Under the pieces are notes generated by a model that worked only from the letters and a program-made list of their open reading frames with translations, was not told the origin of the DNA and searched no databases. 64,000 bases of DNA, taken from the IMG/VR virus record IMGVR_UViG_3300030419_008158, positions 220,430 through 284,429 of that record; one strand, given 5' to 3'. A program made the translations under genes and the position numbers. Of this stretch, positions 11,466-38,229 are shown in pieces. Each line of letters begins with the position of its first letter. The stretch's first letter is position 1.

Positions 11466-11829
11466 TGGTGGAGGTGCCGGGAGTCGAACCCGGGTCCAGC
11501 ATGTCTCCTTCAGCAGGTCATTCACAAGTTTGTCTGATTTATTTCCAAACCAGCAAGGTATCTCGAAAACACCGCGTCCCTATCGAGAATCAGGATCTCA
11601 CCTGCTTGCGCCGGGAACCATTGTGGATCTTTTTTTACTCCGTGAGATCAACCACTTATCCGATCTTTGTTAACAAGGTTACCGGAAACCCCGCGACTAA
11701 GCAGCTAGTGCGTAATCGTACTCAACATTATCGTTGGCAATTAAAGTTCGTAACACTGTCACGCCATGTGTTACAGTTGGCTACTTGCACCTGAAAAATT
11801 CAACACCCTGTCGAAACCATTTCACCCCC
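11466..11829 (-). ncRNA. ssrA: tmRNA; tag (A)ANDNVEYDYALAA* at 11738->11697
   Basis: 5' GGGGGTGAAATGGTTTCGAC, 3' GGTTCGACTCCCGGCACCTCCACCA with G3.U70; internal tag ORF ending ALAA-TAG. Confidence 0.95.
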
Positions 11830-24388: not shown

Positions 24389-26035
24389 CTATCCTGCGTA
24401 GGTTAGCATTCTTTCGGCTTCGCTTGTACCGTACTTGTCAATATAGTATTTTTCTGACAATTCTTCAAATATCTTATTTCCCACGTCGTCGAACTTTTCT
24501 GCTCTTTTAATGTCCTTATGGTATGACTTGGGCAGTGTGACGTAAAGAGGAAAGACCCGTTGAATTCCCAACATTTCATCAGGCTGAAGGTATGGTTTTG
24601 GCATTCTCAAAATAGACTTTTCTATGAAAGAAGTCGCTTGAAGATTCGGGTCTAACCATCCTTCTTCTATCGCTTTCTGTCGTAACACTGTTCCTCTATA
24701 GGGTGCAAATATATTGACTGCGATAGAATCAAAAGTTTCGATGTCCCTTACAAGATTGATGGTATCAAGAACCAACTCTCTTGTCTCGTAGGGCATTCCG
24801 ATAATTGTGTTAACTGAGTAGGGCAATTTGAAATTTCCTAAAATCTTAGCCTTTTCAATCATAGTTTCGTTTTTGATTCTACGATAAAGTCTTTTTCTTC
24901 GAAACTCTTCATTACCATGCTCCAGCCCAAAAGACATTCGATACAAACCTACTTCACGAAGCCATCCTATCTTATCTTCATCAATATCTTCAAACCGAGT
25001 CTGGCACCAGAAAGGAAGCCGAAAGTCTTTGTACATCTCAGCAAATTCTTTTAGTTCGCTTTTTGGGCGGGCCATAAAAGCATCATCATTAATATACAGA
25101 AAATTAGGATTGTACTTCTCAACCATCGATTCTAGCTCTCGTCGAACTGTATCGATACTTTTTCGTCTTGTGTATACGCCCTGCTTTTTTTCTTTTGCAA
25201 GGACACTCTGGATGGGAGAATTACAAAACGTGCACTGGTATGGGCAGCCTCTGTAAGTTTCAATTGGAATTGCCTTCCAAATCTTAGCACCGAGAGGCCT
25301 AAGAAAACGTCTTTCATCGAACAAAGAAAAATCTGGAATTATGTCATTGACATTTACCAGAGGTCTGGGTCCGTTGATTATGATTTTTCCATCTTTATCT
25401 TTTGCCCGGGTTCCTTTGATATCGAGCAGAGATGTAGAGTTTCGCACAGACTCACAAAATTCAGGTATAATGTGCTCTCCTTCACCCGATGCTATGCATT
25501 GCACGTTAGGATCAGAAATTACATCATTCGGTGCCATTGTTGGAAAAACCCCACCTATGATCGATTTAATGTTTGGATATTTTGAAACAACAGACATCAA
25601 GTCTTGCACTTGAGGCCATGTATCCTCGACCAGCGTAGAAACAATAACTACATGTGGGTCAAACTCTTCAAGCTTCTGGGTAAAATCTCCTAACAAGTCT
25701 GTCTTTGGATTGCCAAATAGCTTTATTGGATCAAACTTTCTGCTGGCCATGAGCTTGTTTGCACGCGTAGCACTAGCTGATTCGTCCATTGCTTCTTTTA
25801 CATTTTCATCGTCTGCTTTTCCGACAAACTCATAAGTTGGCATATAAGGTGTGCAGTCAAAAAGATCCACATTATATTTTTGTTCTTTGAGAATTGCTGT
25901 CCACAAGCCTATAGCATAAGAAGGTGTCAACATCATGCTCAAGTTGGGATAGACAATTAAAGTTCGAAAGTCTTCTCTATCAATGCTTTTTGCTGTTGAT
26001 GAAACTTCTTTCTTGATTTTTACTTCTCTAGACAT
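24389..26035 (-). CDS. Cobalamin-binding radical SAM enzyme (class B methyltransferase-like)
   Basis: IIGGVFPT, GEGE, RGCPYQCTFC, DDAF, GMPYET. Confidence 0.85.
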   Translation of the reverse strand: MSREVKIKKEVSSTAKSIDREDFRTLIVYPNLSMMLTPSYAIGLWTAILKEQKYNVDLFDCTPYMPTYEFVGKADDENVKEAMDESASATRANKLMASRKFDPIKLFGNPKTDLLGDFTQKLEEFDPHVVIVSTLVEDTWPQVQDLMSVVSKYPNIKSIIGGVFPTMAPNDVISDPNVQCIASGEGEHIIPEFCESVRNSTSLLDIKGTRAKDKDGKIIINGPRPLVNVNDIIPDFSLFDERRFLRPLGAKIWKAIPIETYRGCPYQCTFCNSPIQSVLAKEKKQGVYTRRKSIDTVRRELESMVEKYNPNFLYINDDAFMARPKSELKEFAEMYKDFRLPFWCQTRFEDIDEDKIGWLREVGLYRMSFGLEHGNEEFRRKRLYRRIKNETMIEKAKILGNFKLPYSVNTIIGMPYETRELVLDTINLVRDIETFDSIAVNIFAPYRGTVLRQKAIEEGWLDPNLQATSFIEKSILRMPKPYLQPDEMLGIQRVFPLYVTLPKSYHKDIKRAEKFDDVGNKIFEELSEKYYIDKYGTSEAERMLTYAG

Positions 26036-26387
26036 CTATTTCTTCTATTCCTTTATTTCTAGTAACACAGTAGGCATACGCCGTAGGAATATCAGAATCT
26101 TTTTTGAAATCATTGATGAGAATTCTGGATCCGCCGCCGATGCCCATGACAAGCTGATCGTATATTATGCCCGCATCAGACAATTGTTCAACTGTCTGCT
26201 TTCGCATACACTCCTTTCGGCCTGTCACCAGGATTATATTATACCCTTTGCGATCCCACTCATTCAGCTTTTCAATAGTTCCTTTTAGGAGCGTCATTTT
26301 GCTATGAGAAGATGCAGCTGTACTTGGTTTCATATGTGTTACAAGCGTGCCATCAATATCACAAAAAATAGTTTTAGGACGACTCAT
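26028..26387 (-). CDS. HAD phosphatase (capsule-biosynthesis phosphatase-like)
   Basis: DIDGTL, VTGR, YDQLVMG, IND; start refined to MSRPK. Confidence 0.75.
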   Translation of the reverse strand: MSRPKTIFCDIDGTLVTHMKPSTAASSHSKMTLLKGTIEKLNEWDRKGYNIILVTGRKECMRKQTVEQLSDAGIIYDQLVMGIGGGSRILINDFKKDSDIPTAYAYCVTRNKGIEEIDV

Positions 26388-26402
26388 CTCGCTGTCTCCG
26401 TG

Positions 26403-26478
26403 TGGAGCGGGTGATGGGTCTCGAACCCACAACATTCAGCTTGGAAGGCTGACACTCTACCAATTGAGTTACACCCGC
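26403..26478 (-). tRNA. tRNA-Gly(UCC)
   Basis: Cloverleaf, loop CT-TCC-AA, U73, CCA. Confidence 0.95.
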
Positions 26479-26585: not shown

Positions 26586-27203
26586 TTAATCCTTTTTGCC
26601 GCCATTGTTAACCCAGCTAAGTTTTTTCCTAAGCATTTTATGAATTCCTGGATTCACGATCAAAGATTTTGGTAGCAATTCGTGTCTAATAAAATTTCTC
26701 ATAAATCGAGTATCAGAGTTACTGGGATCTTCAACATAAGATACGTTCTTTCTTGCACACCAATCTTCAAAAATTGCTTTTCTGGTTTGCAAAAAAGGTC
26801 GAATATAACAATCTCTAGTCTCTGGGATCAAATACGAAGTACCGTGCAGTGAAGTAAAAATCCAAGTCTCAGCAACGTCATCCAAGTGATGACATGTAAT
26901 TACTGGCAGATTTTCTCGAGAATCTTCAAAAAAATCATATCTCTTCACTCTCCAAAAGTCTTCTAAAGAAACACCCTTTGGAGGTTCATCCCAGTTTTTT
27001 CCCACAGTAATTGGGATATCTTTTTCTATACAGTACTTTCGAACTAGAACCTCTGCCTTGTCAGAATAATCTGTCCCGTGATTATAGTGCAGAACACGCA
27101 CATCGTGTGACTTGCGTAAAAAATCTAAAGCTGCCATTGAATCACAACCACCGGACACAGCAATAGCAATTTGTCTCGGCAGCTTTCTTGAAAGTCGAAT
27201 CAC
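26586..27203 (-). CDS. tilS: tRNA(Ile)-lysidine synthase (catalytic domain only)
   Basis: AVSGGCDS, HYNHG, RY.FF, HHLDDVAET, IRPFL, EDPSN, RNFIRH. Confidence 0.9.
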   Translation of the reverse strand: MIRLSRKLPRQIAIAVSGGCDSMAALDFLRKSHDVRVLHYNHGTDYSDKAEVLVRKYCIEKDIPITVGKNWDEPPKGVSLEDFWRVKRYDFFEDSRENLPVITCHHLDDVAETWIFTSLHGTSYLIPETRDCYIRPFLQTRKAIFEDWCARKNVSYVEDPSNSDTRFMRNFIRHELLPKSLIVNPGIHKMLRKKLSWVNNGGKKD

Positions 27204-27221
27204 GACAATCTCCTTTTTGAA

Positions 27222-27298
27222 TGGTGGGCCTCCGGGGACTTGAACCCCGAACCTGCCGGTTATGAGCCGGATGCTCTAACCTATTGAGCTAGAGGCCC
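27222..27298 (-). tRNA. tRNA-Ile2(CAU, lysidine substrate); Met not excluded
   Basis: GGGCCTCTAGCTCA...CCGG CT-CAT-AA CCGG...ACCA; directly upstream of tilS. Confidence 0.85.
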
Positions 27299-27308
27299 TC
27301 AAATAACT

Positions 27309-27381
27309 TACCCCCTGTCCGGTTCGAACGGACGACCTAGCGGTTAAAAGCCGCGTGCTCTACCAACTGAGCTAAGGAGGT
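27309..27381 (-). tRNA. tRNA-Lys(UUU), no encoded CCA
   Basis: ACCTCCT/AGGGGGT acceptor, loop CT-TTT-AA, T-arm GTCCG-TTCGAAC-CGGAC. Confidence 0.9.
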
Positions 27382-27387
27382 ATAAAT

Positions 27388-27602
27388 GAAGCGGGTCACC
27401 CAACATCCCGCTTCTGACACGGCCTATCCCCCTCGGCCTAACTGCGGGTTATCGCAGGTCTGCATTCTGGGTTACGCTTACGCAATCACGAGCCTGGCTT
27501 CAACCGGCATGCCACTCGCTCCATCTCGTTTATAAGATGTTAACGCTCCAAACGCTAAGCTAAGTGCCCGGTGATCTATCCAGGTCCCTTGACCCGTGTC
27601 TC
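27388..27602 (-). ncRNA. Unassigned structured ncRNA candidate in the tRNA cluster
   Basis: Closing helix GACACGG/CCGTGTC, several internal hairpins, 3' hairpin GAAGCGGG/CCCGCTTC; no credible ORF. Confidence 0.45.
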
Positions 27603-27618
27603 CCACATAACTTTATCA

Positions 27619-27797
27619 AACCCGGGGCCGGATTTGAACCGGCTACCCCACCTCGTAACGTAGATCCACTTTGCATAAGTGTTTCCAACGCAGACCCCAT
27701 CGCCACTAGTTCCGGCAGGGGCGATCTTCCCTGTTTGCTCCGGTGTGTGGATCTTTGGTTTCCTACTGGGTGCGCTCTCCCAATGAGCTACCCGGGT
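27619..27797 (-). ncRNA. tRNA-like RNA with 114-nt structured insert replacing the anticodon loop
   Basis: Acceptor ACCCGGG/CCCGGGT, D-stem GCTC/GAGC, T-arm GCCGG-TTCAAAT-CCGGC, anticodon stem CACC/GGTG. Confidence 0.8.
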
Positions 27798-27803
27798 ACA
27801 TAA

Positions 27804-27880
27804 TGGCACCCCGAACAGGATTCGAACCTGTGACCCTCGGCTTAGAAGGCCGATGCTCTATCCAGCTGAGCTATCGGGGC
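27804..27880 (-). tRNA. tRNA-Arg(UCU)
   Basis: Cloverleaf, loop CT-TCT-AA, CCA. Confidence 0.95.
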
Positions 27881-27918
27881 ATTTTTTATTTAGATTTCAA
27901 TGAGCAATCTTACAAGAT

Positions 27919-27947
27919 ATTATAACATCTTCATTGATCATTTACAT
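27919..27947 (-). promoter_or_regulatory. Sigma70-like promoter ATGTAA-N17-TATAAT (extended -10 TG)
   Basis: Matches the window-wide GTGTAA-N17-TATAAT motif; upstream of tRNA-Arg. Confidence 0.65.
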
Positions 27948-27959
27948 CTATTATATGAT

Positions 27960-28045
27960 TGGTGCGGCTGGCGGGATTCGAACCCGCATAGCTCAAAGCC
28001 GACAGATTTTAAGTCTGTTGTGTATACCAGTTCCACCACAGCCGC
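27960..28045 (-). tRNA. tRNA-Leu(UAA)
   Basis: Long variable arm, loop CT-TAA-AA, CCA. Confidence 0.95.
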
Positions 28046-28093
28046 GAAATCTCTTTATATTTCAATGAGCGTGTCAACCTCTTGACAGAAAAT

Positions 28094-28122
28094 ATTATAA
28101 CACGCTGTGACTGTCTTTACAC
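28094..28122 (-). promoter_or_regulatory. Promoter GTGTAA-N17-TATAAT
   Basis: Exact motif upstream of tRNA-Leu. Confidence 0.7.
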
Positions 28123-28132
28123 GAAATAAGCC

Positions 28133-28531
28133 CTACAGAACAGTAGAGGCTACTATTTTTTTTGCCCACTTAATACATGGTTTTAGAAAAGCATATGTGT
28201 TTTCTTCCAGAACGTCCCAATCAACCCACTGTGAGTCAATGTGCTCAACGACGAGAGTGTGTGGGTGAGGAGTTATGACTGGATCTTGGGTTGTCTGTGC
28301 CACGTAGCATGTCATATCTCCACTGATTACACTCTTGTTGCCCCAGACAAAATTGAGATTTGTAATGCCAGCTTCTTCTTTGGTTTCACGTAAAGCTGCT
28401 TCTAAAGAAGACTCTCCGGGATCAATGATACCCTTGGGAATATCCATCACGCCGTCTCTTGCGATAAGTGCAAGAACTTTTGTCTTTTCGTGAATCTGTC
28501 TGACGATTATAATTCCAGCGCCGGGTTTCAT
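28133..28531 (-). CDS. NUDIX hydrolase
   Basis: PKG..DPGE...AALRETKEEAG Nudix box. Confidence 0.9.
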   Translation of the reverse strand: MKPGAGIIIVRQIHEKTKVLALIARDGVMDIPKGIIDPGESSLEAALRETKEEAGITNLNFVWGNKSVISGDMTCYVAQTTQDPVITPHPHTLVVEHIDSQWVDWDVLEENTYAFLKPCIKWAKKIVASTVL

Positions 28532-28716
28532 TTCTTTTTCTTTCTACGTGCTGAACGTCTGATGAACTTTTCCAACAAAAAAAGTCGCCGCTTTAGAAAC
28601 TTGTTCTCTAGTTCGAGGCGTTTGCGTGCTTCTTCGTCTTCTGGGCTCATGAATAGAAAGGAGACGAAAATTCCTGCTAAAAAGCAAAGAAAATGGGTTA
28701 CAAATGTATAGACCAT
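28528..28716 (-). CDS. Small membrane protein with basic C-terminus
   Basis: One TM helix, GGAG RBS. Confidence 0.6.
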   Translation of the reverse strand: MVYTFVTHFLCFLAGIFVSFLFMSPEDEEARKRLELENKFLKRRLFLLEKFIRRSARRKKKK

Positions 28717-36850: not shown

Positions 36851-38080
36851 CTACTGCAAGGAAAAGGGAAGGTTTTCACCCTTGTTTCCGCCGGCGGCAA
36901 CCACATCCTTGTAATAACTCCGACAAACTGTTCGGAAATAATCCACACCACCCTCATTTGGGCTGTAGAGTGAATAGAGAGTCTTATAACCTAGGTTACT
37001 ATTGGCTCCGGCATTCGTTGCTTCTACGACCTCACTAACCATATCATATGCCACTGCACGAATCTCTTCTGGCAGCGTAATGAGCATCTTATCCAGCCGA
37101 TCATTCTTGATACAGTTCATCAAGTACTTGTAGCTTAGCTTAGATTTTACCATTTCTCCAATATAAGCGATGTACTTGAACTTGATGCGTCGATCTTTGC
37201 CATCGGCGTCTGGAATAAACGCAACCCAGCCCTCACGATTATGAACATCACGGTCGTTGATCTCTGCTACAAGCTCAGTCAGAGTCATTTCTCGAAACTC
37301 TGGCAATACAAAATACTCGTACAATTCATCGGAGATTGCCTCGAGAACCGGGCGGCCAACCATTTCGCCGCTAGTGTCGTATGCTTCAAGCAAGAACAGC
37401 TTTTTAGCATCACCATAGTCCACATGAACTCGAGTAATGGGATGAACAAACTCACAAACTAAGCTCATCAGATCCTTGCCAAACCGCTTTGAAATGATTT
37501 GTGCCTTCATGAATGTGCTTCGTGCAATCATGTCAAGCGCAGCTTCAGCTGAAGGCGTGCCTAAGCGGCCTCGAGTAGTTGCGCATAGCTTGCGATCATG
37601 CATAAAATACTCGATCATGTGACCGTCTTCTTTAGCAGTGCATGATAACAGCTTCTTACCTGCAGCAGCAGCAAGAACATCCATGCCCGTCTCAGGGATT
37701 TCTGATTGGTTGAAGAACTTCTCAAAACCGCGAGAGACGAGCCTTACGCCTTCTACATTTCCTGGATTTTCCCAGGCGTAAATAAGACCTCGCATTTGTC
37801 GCAAGACAGGAGACCATCCGCCTTCAATCTCGTGCAGCAAGTTGTGTGCTGAAGCTGAATAGTTCAGCAAAATAAGCTTTCGCTCTTCGTCGATGTCAAA
37901 TCCGATAAGAGATCCCGCCTGCAACCCCCATTCCGGATTGACGCCAAGAATCTCACACAACTCGCGATCATAACTCTTTTTGAAAGAAGCCCAATTAGCC
38001 TTCTTATCATCACGGTTAGTCATCTCACGAGTGATGAGTGCAACAAGTTGAGGGATTTGATTGTCCAAGATCTGATTCAT
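36851..38080 (-). CDS. ATP-dependent RNA ligase (T4 Rnl1-like)
   Basis: MRGLI, SRGFEKFFN, KEDG, ATTRG, CEFV, EGWV, IKFK; start MNQIL with GGAG RBS. Confidence 0.8.
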   Translation of the reverse strand: MNQILDNQIPQLVALITREMTNRDDKKANWASFKKSYDRELCEILGVNPEWGLQAGSLIGFDIDEERKLILLNYSASAHNLLHEIEGGWSPVLRQMRGLIYAWENPGNVEGVRLVSRGFEKFFNQSEIPETGMDVLAAAAGKKLLSCTAKEDGHMIEYFMHDRKLCATTRGRLGTPSAEAALDMIARSTFMKAQIISKRFGKDLMSLVCEFVHPITRVHVDYGDAKKLFLLEAYDTSGEMVGRPVLEAISDELYEYFVLPEFREMTLTELVAEINDRDVHNREGWVAFIPDADGKDRRIKFKYIAYIGEMVKSKLSYKYLMNCIKNDRLDKMLITLPEEIRAVAYDMVSEVVEATNAGANSNLGYKTLYSLYSPNEGGVDYFRTVCRSYYKDVVAAGGNKGENLPFSLQ

Positions 38081-38088
38081 GCTTTCTC

Positions 38089-38229
38089 CTAAACGCCCAT
38101 GGCGCACATGCAAACAACTAAAACATACATCATCGGTATGCTGATGATTCCAAAAATAATATCGTTACGAAGCTCACGCTTTCGAATAGTTTCCCACTTT
38201 TCGTTTCGGGGTAGTTTTCGAAAAACCAT
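38089..38229 (-). CDS. Small single-TM protein (46 aa)
   Basis: Below cutoff; AGGAGG RBS; MVFRKLPRNEKW...IIFGIISIPMMYVLVVCMCAMGV. Confidence 0.6.
   Translation of the reverse strand: MVFRKLPRNEKWETIRKRELRNDIIFGIISIPMMYVLVVCMCAMGV

Follow-up and report, generated by a model that had tools for sequence, protein, structure and literature searches.

A family of conserved structured small RNAs carried by uncultured marine phages

Locus and genomic setting

The stretch of DNA analysed here (the window, 64,000 nucleotides) is the last 64 kb of a 284,429-bp IMG/VR virus record, IMGVR_UViG_3300030419_008158, that is rated 100% complete. The window is marked as part of a myophage with an RNA-metabolism island by a tail sheath protein, an Rnl1-type RNA ligase, eight tRNAs, a tmRNA, a TilS N-domain protein, a Nudix hydrolase, a HAD phosphatase and a B12 radical-SAM enzyme. 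Near-identical DNA occurs only in marine and seawater metagenomes. The tmRNA (11466-11829, minus strand) is of the one-piece type (RF00023, 103.9 bits) and has the tag peptide ANDNVEYDYALAA. On the minus strand, a GC-rich non-coding RNA of about 220 nt lies between an intron-bearing tRNA-Val and tRNA-Lys(UUU), in the following order of features:

27927-27919 (-), TGTTATAAT, an extended -10-like element before tRNA-Arg and the likely promoter of the unit (inferred)
27880-27804 (-), tRNA-Arg(UCU)
27797-27619 (-), tRNA-Val(UAC) with a 109-nt insert in the anticodon loop (27659-27767)
27609-27607 (-), UAU just before the conserved RNA, which may be the 5' processing site or part of the mature 5' end
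27606-27602 (-), unpaired 5' tail GUGGG
27600-27594 (-), 5' strand of the closing helix P1, GACACGG
27593-27485 (-), arm P2, with the base helix GUCA/UGAU and a long branched extension above it
27484-27475 (-), mini-hairpin P3, UGC-GUAA-GCG, capped by a GNRA tetraloop
27474-27426 (-), region equivalent to the optional arm P3b, containing a CUGCG/CGCAG hairpin
27425-27423 (-), junction J3/1, an unpaired AGG
27422-27416 (-), 3' strand of P1, CCGUGUC
27414-27388 (-), 3' hairpin P4, 8 bp with loop AUGUUGGGUGA
27387-27382 (-), AUUUAU linker to tRNA-Lys
27382-27308 (-), tRNA-Lys(UUU), placed at 27308-27382 by ARAGORN and at 27309-27381 by Rfam
27298-27222 (-), tRNA(CAU)
27203-26586 (-), tilS-like ORF

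The tilS-like ORF encodes a 205-aa protein that matches only the N-terminal domain of TilS (TIGR02432, 112 bits against a cutoff of 93.6), and its position directly after a tRNA with anticodon CAU suggests a phage-made lysidine tRNA-Ile2. A simple scan found no promoter or terminator on the minus strand inside 27200-28100, and the TGTTATAAT element was read directly from the sequence. By eye, tRNA-Leu and tRNA-Arg are each preceded by a similar leader of about 50 nt (28102-28046 and 27927-27881, minus strand) that starts with TGTTATAATAT and contains GCTCATTGAAAT.TAAA, and these look like repeated promoter-leader cassettes, though the scan did not call them.

The first-pass annotation had described the RNA as an unannotated structured RNA that it did not recognise as RNase P, SRP, 6S or an intron, and that tRNA processing would release. 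The observation is confirmed and this interpretation is supported, with corrections to structural details and to the boundaries. GACACGG pairs with CCGTGTC, GAAGCGGG (27414-27407) pairs with CCCGCTTC (27395-27388) to close an 11-nt loop, and the CCUGG/CCAGG, CCGG/CCGG, CACU/AGUG and AUCUU/GAGAU pairs of the long arm are present, as is the CUGCG/CGCAG hairpin. The unconstrained minimum-free-energy fold contains the closing helix, the long arm, the small hairpins and the 3' hairpin, and the GC content is 0.52-0.56 here against 0.34-0.42 in the flanking genes. The single-sequence z-score is only -1.44, however, so that on its own the fold is not beyond chance, and the proof comes from homologues.

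The conserved RNA starts at G27606 (GUGGGAG), four bases upstream of the end at 27602 first proposed. A GGTC/GACC hairpin proposed in the first-pass annotation is not supported, as GUCA (27593-27590) pairs instead with UGAU (27488-27485) and that pairing covaries. The proposed TTGCG/CGTAA hairpin is better read as UGC-GUAA-GCG, and a proposed pseudoknot between the P4 loop and an internal ACCCAG is peculiar to this copy and absent from the family consensus.

The upstream gene, taken at first for a tRNA-like RNA, is read by ARAGORN with the intron option as tRNA-Val(UAC). Its insert is highly conserved, with compensatory changes (CCGG/CCGG against CCAG/CUGG), in L154, L187 and L200 (here and below, L with a number denotes a related locus or contig). 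In these, the intron mode reads the homologous genes as tRNA-Ala (L154) and tRNA-Cys (L187), so the exon assignment is uncertain. The Rfam group I model does not match the insert, which is about half the size of the smallest group I introns. The insert is absent from two complete or nearly complete genomes that carry the RNA, G003 and G006, and a role for the RNA as a trans partner of the insert was rejected at BLAST sensitivity.

Homologues, architecture and covariation

Rfam 15 gave no match over 27383-27614, either at the gathering threshold or at E <= 10, and none over homologues in L011, L137, L142, L208 and others at E <= 1 to 10. The Rfam group I intron model RF00028 does recognise true introns that interrupt tRNA-Arg(UCU) and tRNA-Leu(UAA) on either side of the copy in L137, an 83-kb phage contig (12982-13172 and 13592-13790, 62.6 and 70.2 bits), but it never hits this RNA. 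A search through synteny with the tilS-like neighbour found nine related loci, none with the RNA beside the gene; a 27-nt exact search for the 3' hairpin gave nothing, and a bare 14-mer search gave mostly chance hits. The first homologue came from a BLAST comparison with G003, a related complete 293-kb phage, in which two short collinear matches led to a 130-nt homologue between tRNA-Leu and tRNA-Lys. Patterns built from the shared motifs then found copies in about 15 IMG/VR contigs of 38-293 kb, and a two-part pattern gave 120 metagenome hits; nearly all are ocean samples. Of the 120, 119 are true copies carrying all the features that were not imposed, three of them cut off at contig ends, and one is a chance hit; 111 of the hits read GUGUC in the 3' strand of P1 and five read GUGUU, which gives a G-U wobble. 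BLAST of cultured phage genomes found no match, although BLAST is weak on a 131-nt RNA and distant copies may exist. A pattern scan of genome contigs returned only three chance hits in coding DNA, but it used the minority GGGAG tail variant, so absence from bacterial genomes is not shown. Literature searches by word and by sequence string found no description of this RNA.

The family architecture was derived from two alignments, A2 and A3. The 5' tail GUGGG is preceded by U, A and U at positions -3, -2 and -1 in 70%, 80% and 79% of 107 copies. P1 (R-GACAC-RR paired with YY-GUGUC-U) is followed by P2, which stacks directly on it and has a covarying base and an arm with 71 distinct sequences in 101 copies. 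After one unpaired U comes P3, which reads UGCGUAAGCG in 101 of 101 copies, though the search patterns partly forced this, while a scan that left P3 free found one relative, L274, with GGAA in the loop. The optional P3b hairpin has 40 distinct versions and is absent in 10 of 101 copies, and its stems differ completely between versions (for example GGUC/GACC, GAGA/UCUC, GGGA/UCCC and GCUAU/AUAGC). The invariant unpaired AGG (columns A180, G181 and G182 in A2), which the metagenome pattern did not impose, precedes the 3' strand of P1. A linker of 1-3 nt leads to P4, of 7-8 bp, with the loop consensus AAG-N-U-GGG-AA.

A covariance model built from A2 finds exactly one copy in the window (27387-27606, 52 bits, E about 2e-10) and one in the whole genome, and the window copy aligns end to end with the family model R1 (positions 1-131, 52.2 bits, E 2e-10 to 5e-10) and carries every element. 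The window copy is the largest seen and has the most expanded P2 found. L136 has a homologous shorter arm (UUUGG..CCAAA against CCUGG..CCAGG here), to which the window copy adds a branched extension, and relatives in DNA and RNA runs replace 27516-27565 with 8-12 nt. The P3b region of the window copy, at 49 nt, is an enlarged form of the optional hairpin.

Covariation was measured on 101 distinct sequences. In these, 99.3% of pair cells are canonical against a shuffled mean of 91.1%, 12 of 21 pairs have changes on both sides, 193 cells carry double changes against 42 expected, and 0 of 500 shuffles reach any of the measures; sliding the 3' partners by 1-3 columns drops pairing to 22-50%. All seven modelled P4 pairs, three of the four P2-base pairs and two of the eight P1 pairs covary, the last being the two inner pairs (AU 75 / GC 23 / GU 2, and GC 90 / AU 5 / GU 5), while the rest of P1 never varies. 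Frequent G-U pairs exist only on this strand (for example GU 54 / AU 47 at pair 14-162), which fixes the RNA to the minus strand of the window. It should be noted that A3 was fitted to the structure of the model, and that the invariance of GUGGGRGACAC and UUGCGUAAGCG was partly forced by the search patterns, although each motif also turned up in scans that did not impose it; hits of a scan with the 3' half, which did not impose the tail, still carry it. A 42-codon frame starts at G1 in the window copy, but across the family frames starting at G1 run from 6 to more than 42 codons and the peptides differ, so that there is no conserved reading frame. Despite the modest fold z-score, the possibility that the locus is a chance GC-rich fold, a short protein-coding gene or a DNA-level site is contradicted by the covariation, the lack of a conserved frame, the more than 100 homologues and the expression data below. 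We are highly confident that this is a real structured RNA family.

Expression and context across the family

In a marine metatranscriptome (run X20), one contig of 166 nt with word depth 27.6 is identical to 27427-27592, and two more contigs are close variants of the same RNA. The tilS-like gene (26600-27200) and the Nudix side (28100-28600) have depth 0 in X20, while a DNA run, X1, is flat at about 10-15 over the whole region. This is what a stable small RNA would give and what contaminating DNA would not, although contigs cannot show RNA ends, strand or true abundance. The contig probably breaks at the conserved P1 and tail words that are shared with relatives.

In this phage the RNA is inferred to be co-transcribed with tRNA-Arg, tRNA-Val, tRNA-Lys and tRNA(CAU). 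Release by tRNA processing, as proposed in the first-pass annotation, explains only the 3' end: tRNA-Lys starts 6 nt after P4, and RNase P cleavage there, inferred from established tRNA maturation, would set the 3' end of the RNA. The 5' end lies 12 nt after tRNA-Val and needs another cut, inferred to be endonucleolytic, in the AU-rich UAU|G linker.

Of 109 copies, 40 have a tRNA within 1.5 kb, always on the same strand, which leaves room for a tRNA-linked role. A tRNA ends 15 nt or less upstream in 9 copies (Arg-UCU in 6, one of them interrupted by a group I intron), and a tRNA starts 15 nt or less after P4 in 17 copies (Lys 8, Met 5, Leu 3, Ala 1). These positions and the conserved UAU would be consistent with a cis-acting processing or punctuation element of polycistronic tRNA transcripts, a folded spacer that guides RNase P, RNase E or RNase Z cuts or protects neighbouring tRNAs, with no function of its own after release. 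We consider this unlikely. The other 69 copies have no tRNA within about 1.5 kb in the sequence available, and in mid-size phages (L133, L134, L154, L257, L266 and others) a near-consensus sigma-70 promoter, TTGACA-17-GATAAT, ends 4-9 nt before G1 and P4 plus a U-run ends the gene. In addition, a spacer would not need an invariant tetraloop hairpin, an invariant AGG and conserved loop bases across unrelated phages, and the RNA itself accumulates in an RNA library.

A U-run follows P4 in 63 of 101 copies, but not in the window. It is lost where a tRNA follows, yet the loop sequence is kept, and P4 is therefore more than a terminator. In L134, L155, L187 and L220 the order is promoter, RNA, P4 plus U-run, then directly a ribosome-binding site and a gene, with no second promoter, and this, together with a highly conserved junction core and variable peripheral arms, could point to a riboswitch or attenuator controlling read-through of P4. 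Such a role seems very unlikely, as the P4 stems covary freely with no conserved alternative partner, so that no anti-terminator can form, and a conserved loop is unusual for an expression platform. Furthermore, 38 of 101 copies have no U-run, many are followed by a tRNA or a new promoter, and no gene family recurs downstream.

No protein family is a constant neighbour of the RNA. The commonest apparent neighbour cluster was an artefact of translating an adjacent conserved non-coding element, and a MoxR/CobS-like ATPase lies in 13 of 132 loci at varying distance and orientation. A small basic protein with a conserved core of about 50 aa, carrying the motif NW.AVAAHF..AGSH.D.KK...ACRG and without a PHROG match, lies a few hundred bases from the RNA on the same strand in 20 loci (L169:2623-2805 (-), L206:3126-3515 (-) and 18 others). 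About 16 of the 21 relatives aligned carry a second conserved non-coding element of about 175 nt directly upstream of the RNA (L011:1270-1446 (+); also L142, L163, L166, L203, L211, L216, L226, L235, L241 and L256), the two being separated by ..CUUUAU. This element has no Rfam match, contains ..AAGARGUCCG.. and has a hairpin loop GUGGGRRU that pairs with a downstream AYYCCCAC in a pseudoknot that covaries; the window lacks it, and tRNA-Val holds that position. Further conserved non-coding blocks, one of them GUCGUCUGGAGCCGAAAGGCUAGGUUCC and another CCCAGGUCCGAAAGGAGGNGCUCAAAGAGG..GGACGGUCAAGCCAGUUAUUGGUGUUCUGGG, lie 250-330 nt upstream of the RNA in L142, L158, L185, L211, L216, L226, L228 and L256, following a GGTATAAT-type promoter, and this may be a whole island of unknown RNAs.

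Possible function and relationship to known RNAs

The only invariant unpaired bases of the family are G-rich, namely the GUGGG tail, AGG in the junction and GGGAA in the P4 loop, and the family has no conserved C-rich partner for them within the RNA. The tail sits directly 5' of P1 and P4 starts 1-3 nt 3' of it, so P1 would place the tail and the P4 loop side by side with two UGGG-type motifs facing the same way. We favour, tentatively, a stable and rigid scaffold acting in trans, which would capture a conserved C-rich RNA segment or an RNA-binding protein of the host or phage translation or RNA-processing machinery and so serve as a decoy or sponge during infection. The stand-alone copies, in which the RNA is inferred to be transcribed from its own promoter starting at or next to G1 and to end at P4 acting as an intrinsic terminator, are consistent with such a role. 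No partner has been identified: sequences complementary to the P4 loop are no more frequent than reversed-pattern controls in the genome of this phage (G000) or in G003. The only perfect 11-nt complement to the P4 loop of the window RNA elsewhere in the genome, TCACCCAACAT (G000:C1:61254-61264 (+), outside the window), is probably a chance match, as G003 has no equivalent, although only about 0.14 such matches are expected by chance. Strong conservation of a junction core is also more typical of ribozymes, aptamers and ribonucleoprotein scaffolds than of simple sponges. Taken as a whole, an uncatalogued family of structured RNAs, 100-225 nt long, made and acting in this way is the explanation we consider more likely than not, although we are less confident of the trans-acting mechanism itself.

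Phage tRNA islands are already known to hold structured RNAs without an assigned function, and what is new here is a family that is not a member of any described one. The nearest analogues are the stable RNAs rnaD (species 2) and rnaC (species 1) of phage T4, which are small RNAs of unknown function, co-transcribed with the tRNAs of a phage cluster and cut out of the same precursor. In T4 they start 1 nt after tRNA-Arg, and in the present family tRNA-Arg(UCU) is the commonest tRNA directly upstream and heads the unit in the window, but this is a positional analogy only. There is no sequence or structure similarity; the family model scores the T4 tRNA region at 5.3 bits or less with filters off and without a hit on rnaC or rnaD. 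The T4 RNAs also end in tRNA-like features, ..GCGCACCA in rnaD and a GGUUCGAAUCC T-arm in rnaC, whereas this family has no T-arm or CCA at its 3' end and exists also as a stand-alone gene. GOLLD and ROOL are orphan structured RNAs of phages and prophages, often near tRNA islands, with a conserved core and variable peripheral arms (PMC12286853), but they are 500-800 nt or more and form RNA-only cages, and their Rfam models give no match here. In CsrB/RsmZ-type sponge RNAs, G-rich motifs (GGGA or GGGAA) may likewise be displayed in a hairpin loop and in a single strand with a terminator hairpin as the last element. There are only two such sites here, however, the invariant junction appears to have no counterpart in those sponges, and GGA is missing from the loop of the window copy (UUGGGUGA). 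The present family is small enough for direct biochemistry and structure work, its core is extremely conserved from jumbo myophages to genomes of 57-93 kb, and it is abundant in ocean metagenomes and visibly expressed in a metatranscriptome, making it a tractable entry point to what such RNAs do during infection. It also provides an Rfam-ready alignment that would stop these loci being annotated as empty intergenic DNA or spurious ORFs.

Theta (HDV-like) ribozymes show that phages place ribozymes next to tRNAs (bioRxiv 10.1101/2023.06.13.544163), and since the RNA starts 1-15 nt after a tRNA in 9 copies and has a sharp, conserved 5' boundary, a new self-cleaving ribozyme that frees the 3' trailer of the upstream tRNA could be envisaged. 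This is very doubtful, as no Rfam ribozyme model matches at E <= 10, the 5' GUGGG has no conserved complement, so that an HDV-type P1 and nested double pseudoknot cannot form, and in stand-alone copies transcription is inferred to start at or within a few bases of G1, leaving almost nothing to cleave off.

It is also conceivable, though unlikely, that the RNA is a new functional class and not a passive decoy. It could be a compact catalytic or tRNA-handling RNA whose two UGGG elements pair with C-rich single strands, such as the NCCA 3' ends or anticodon loops of tRNAs, in the way T-box and RNase P RNAs grip CCA ends, or it could be a ligand-binding RNA that phages use to take over host translation or to blunt tRNA-targeting defences. 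Either would fit its home among tRNAs, a TilS-like gene, a tmRNA, an RNA ligase and a phosphatase. The Rnl1-type RNA ligase (phrog_562; 36851-38113, minus strand), a HAD or polynucleotide-kinase-like phosphatase (26028-26435, minus strand) and a Nudix hydrolase (28133-28531, minus strand) lie near the tRNA cluster, and together they could form a tRNA repair set against host anticodon nucleases.
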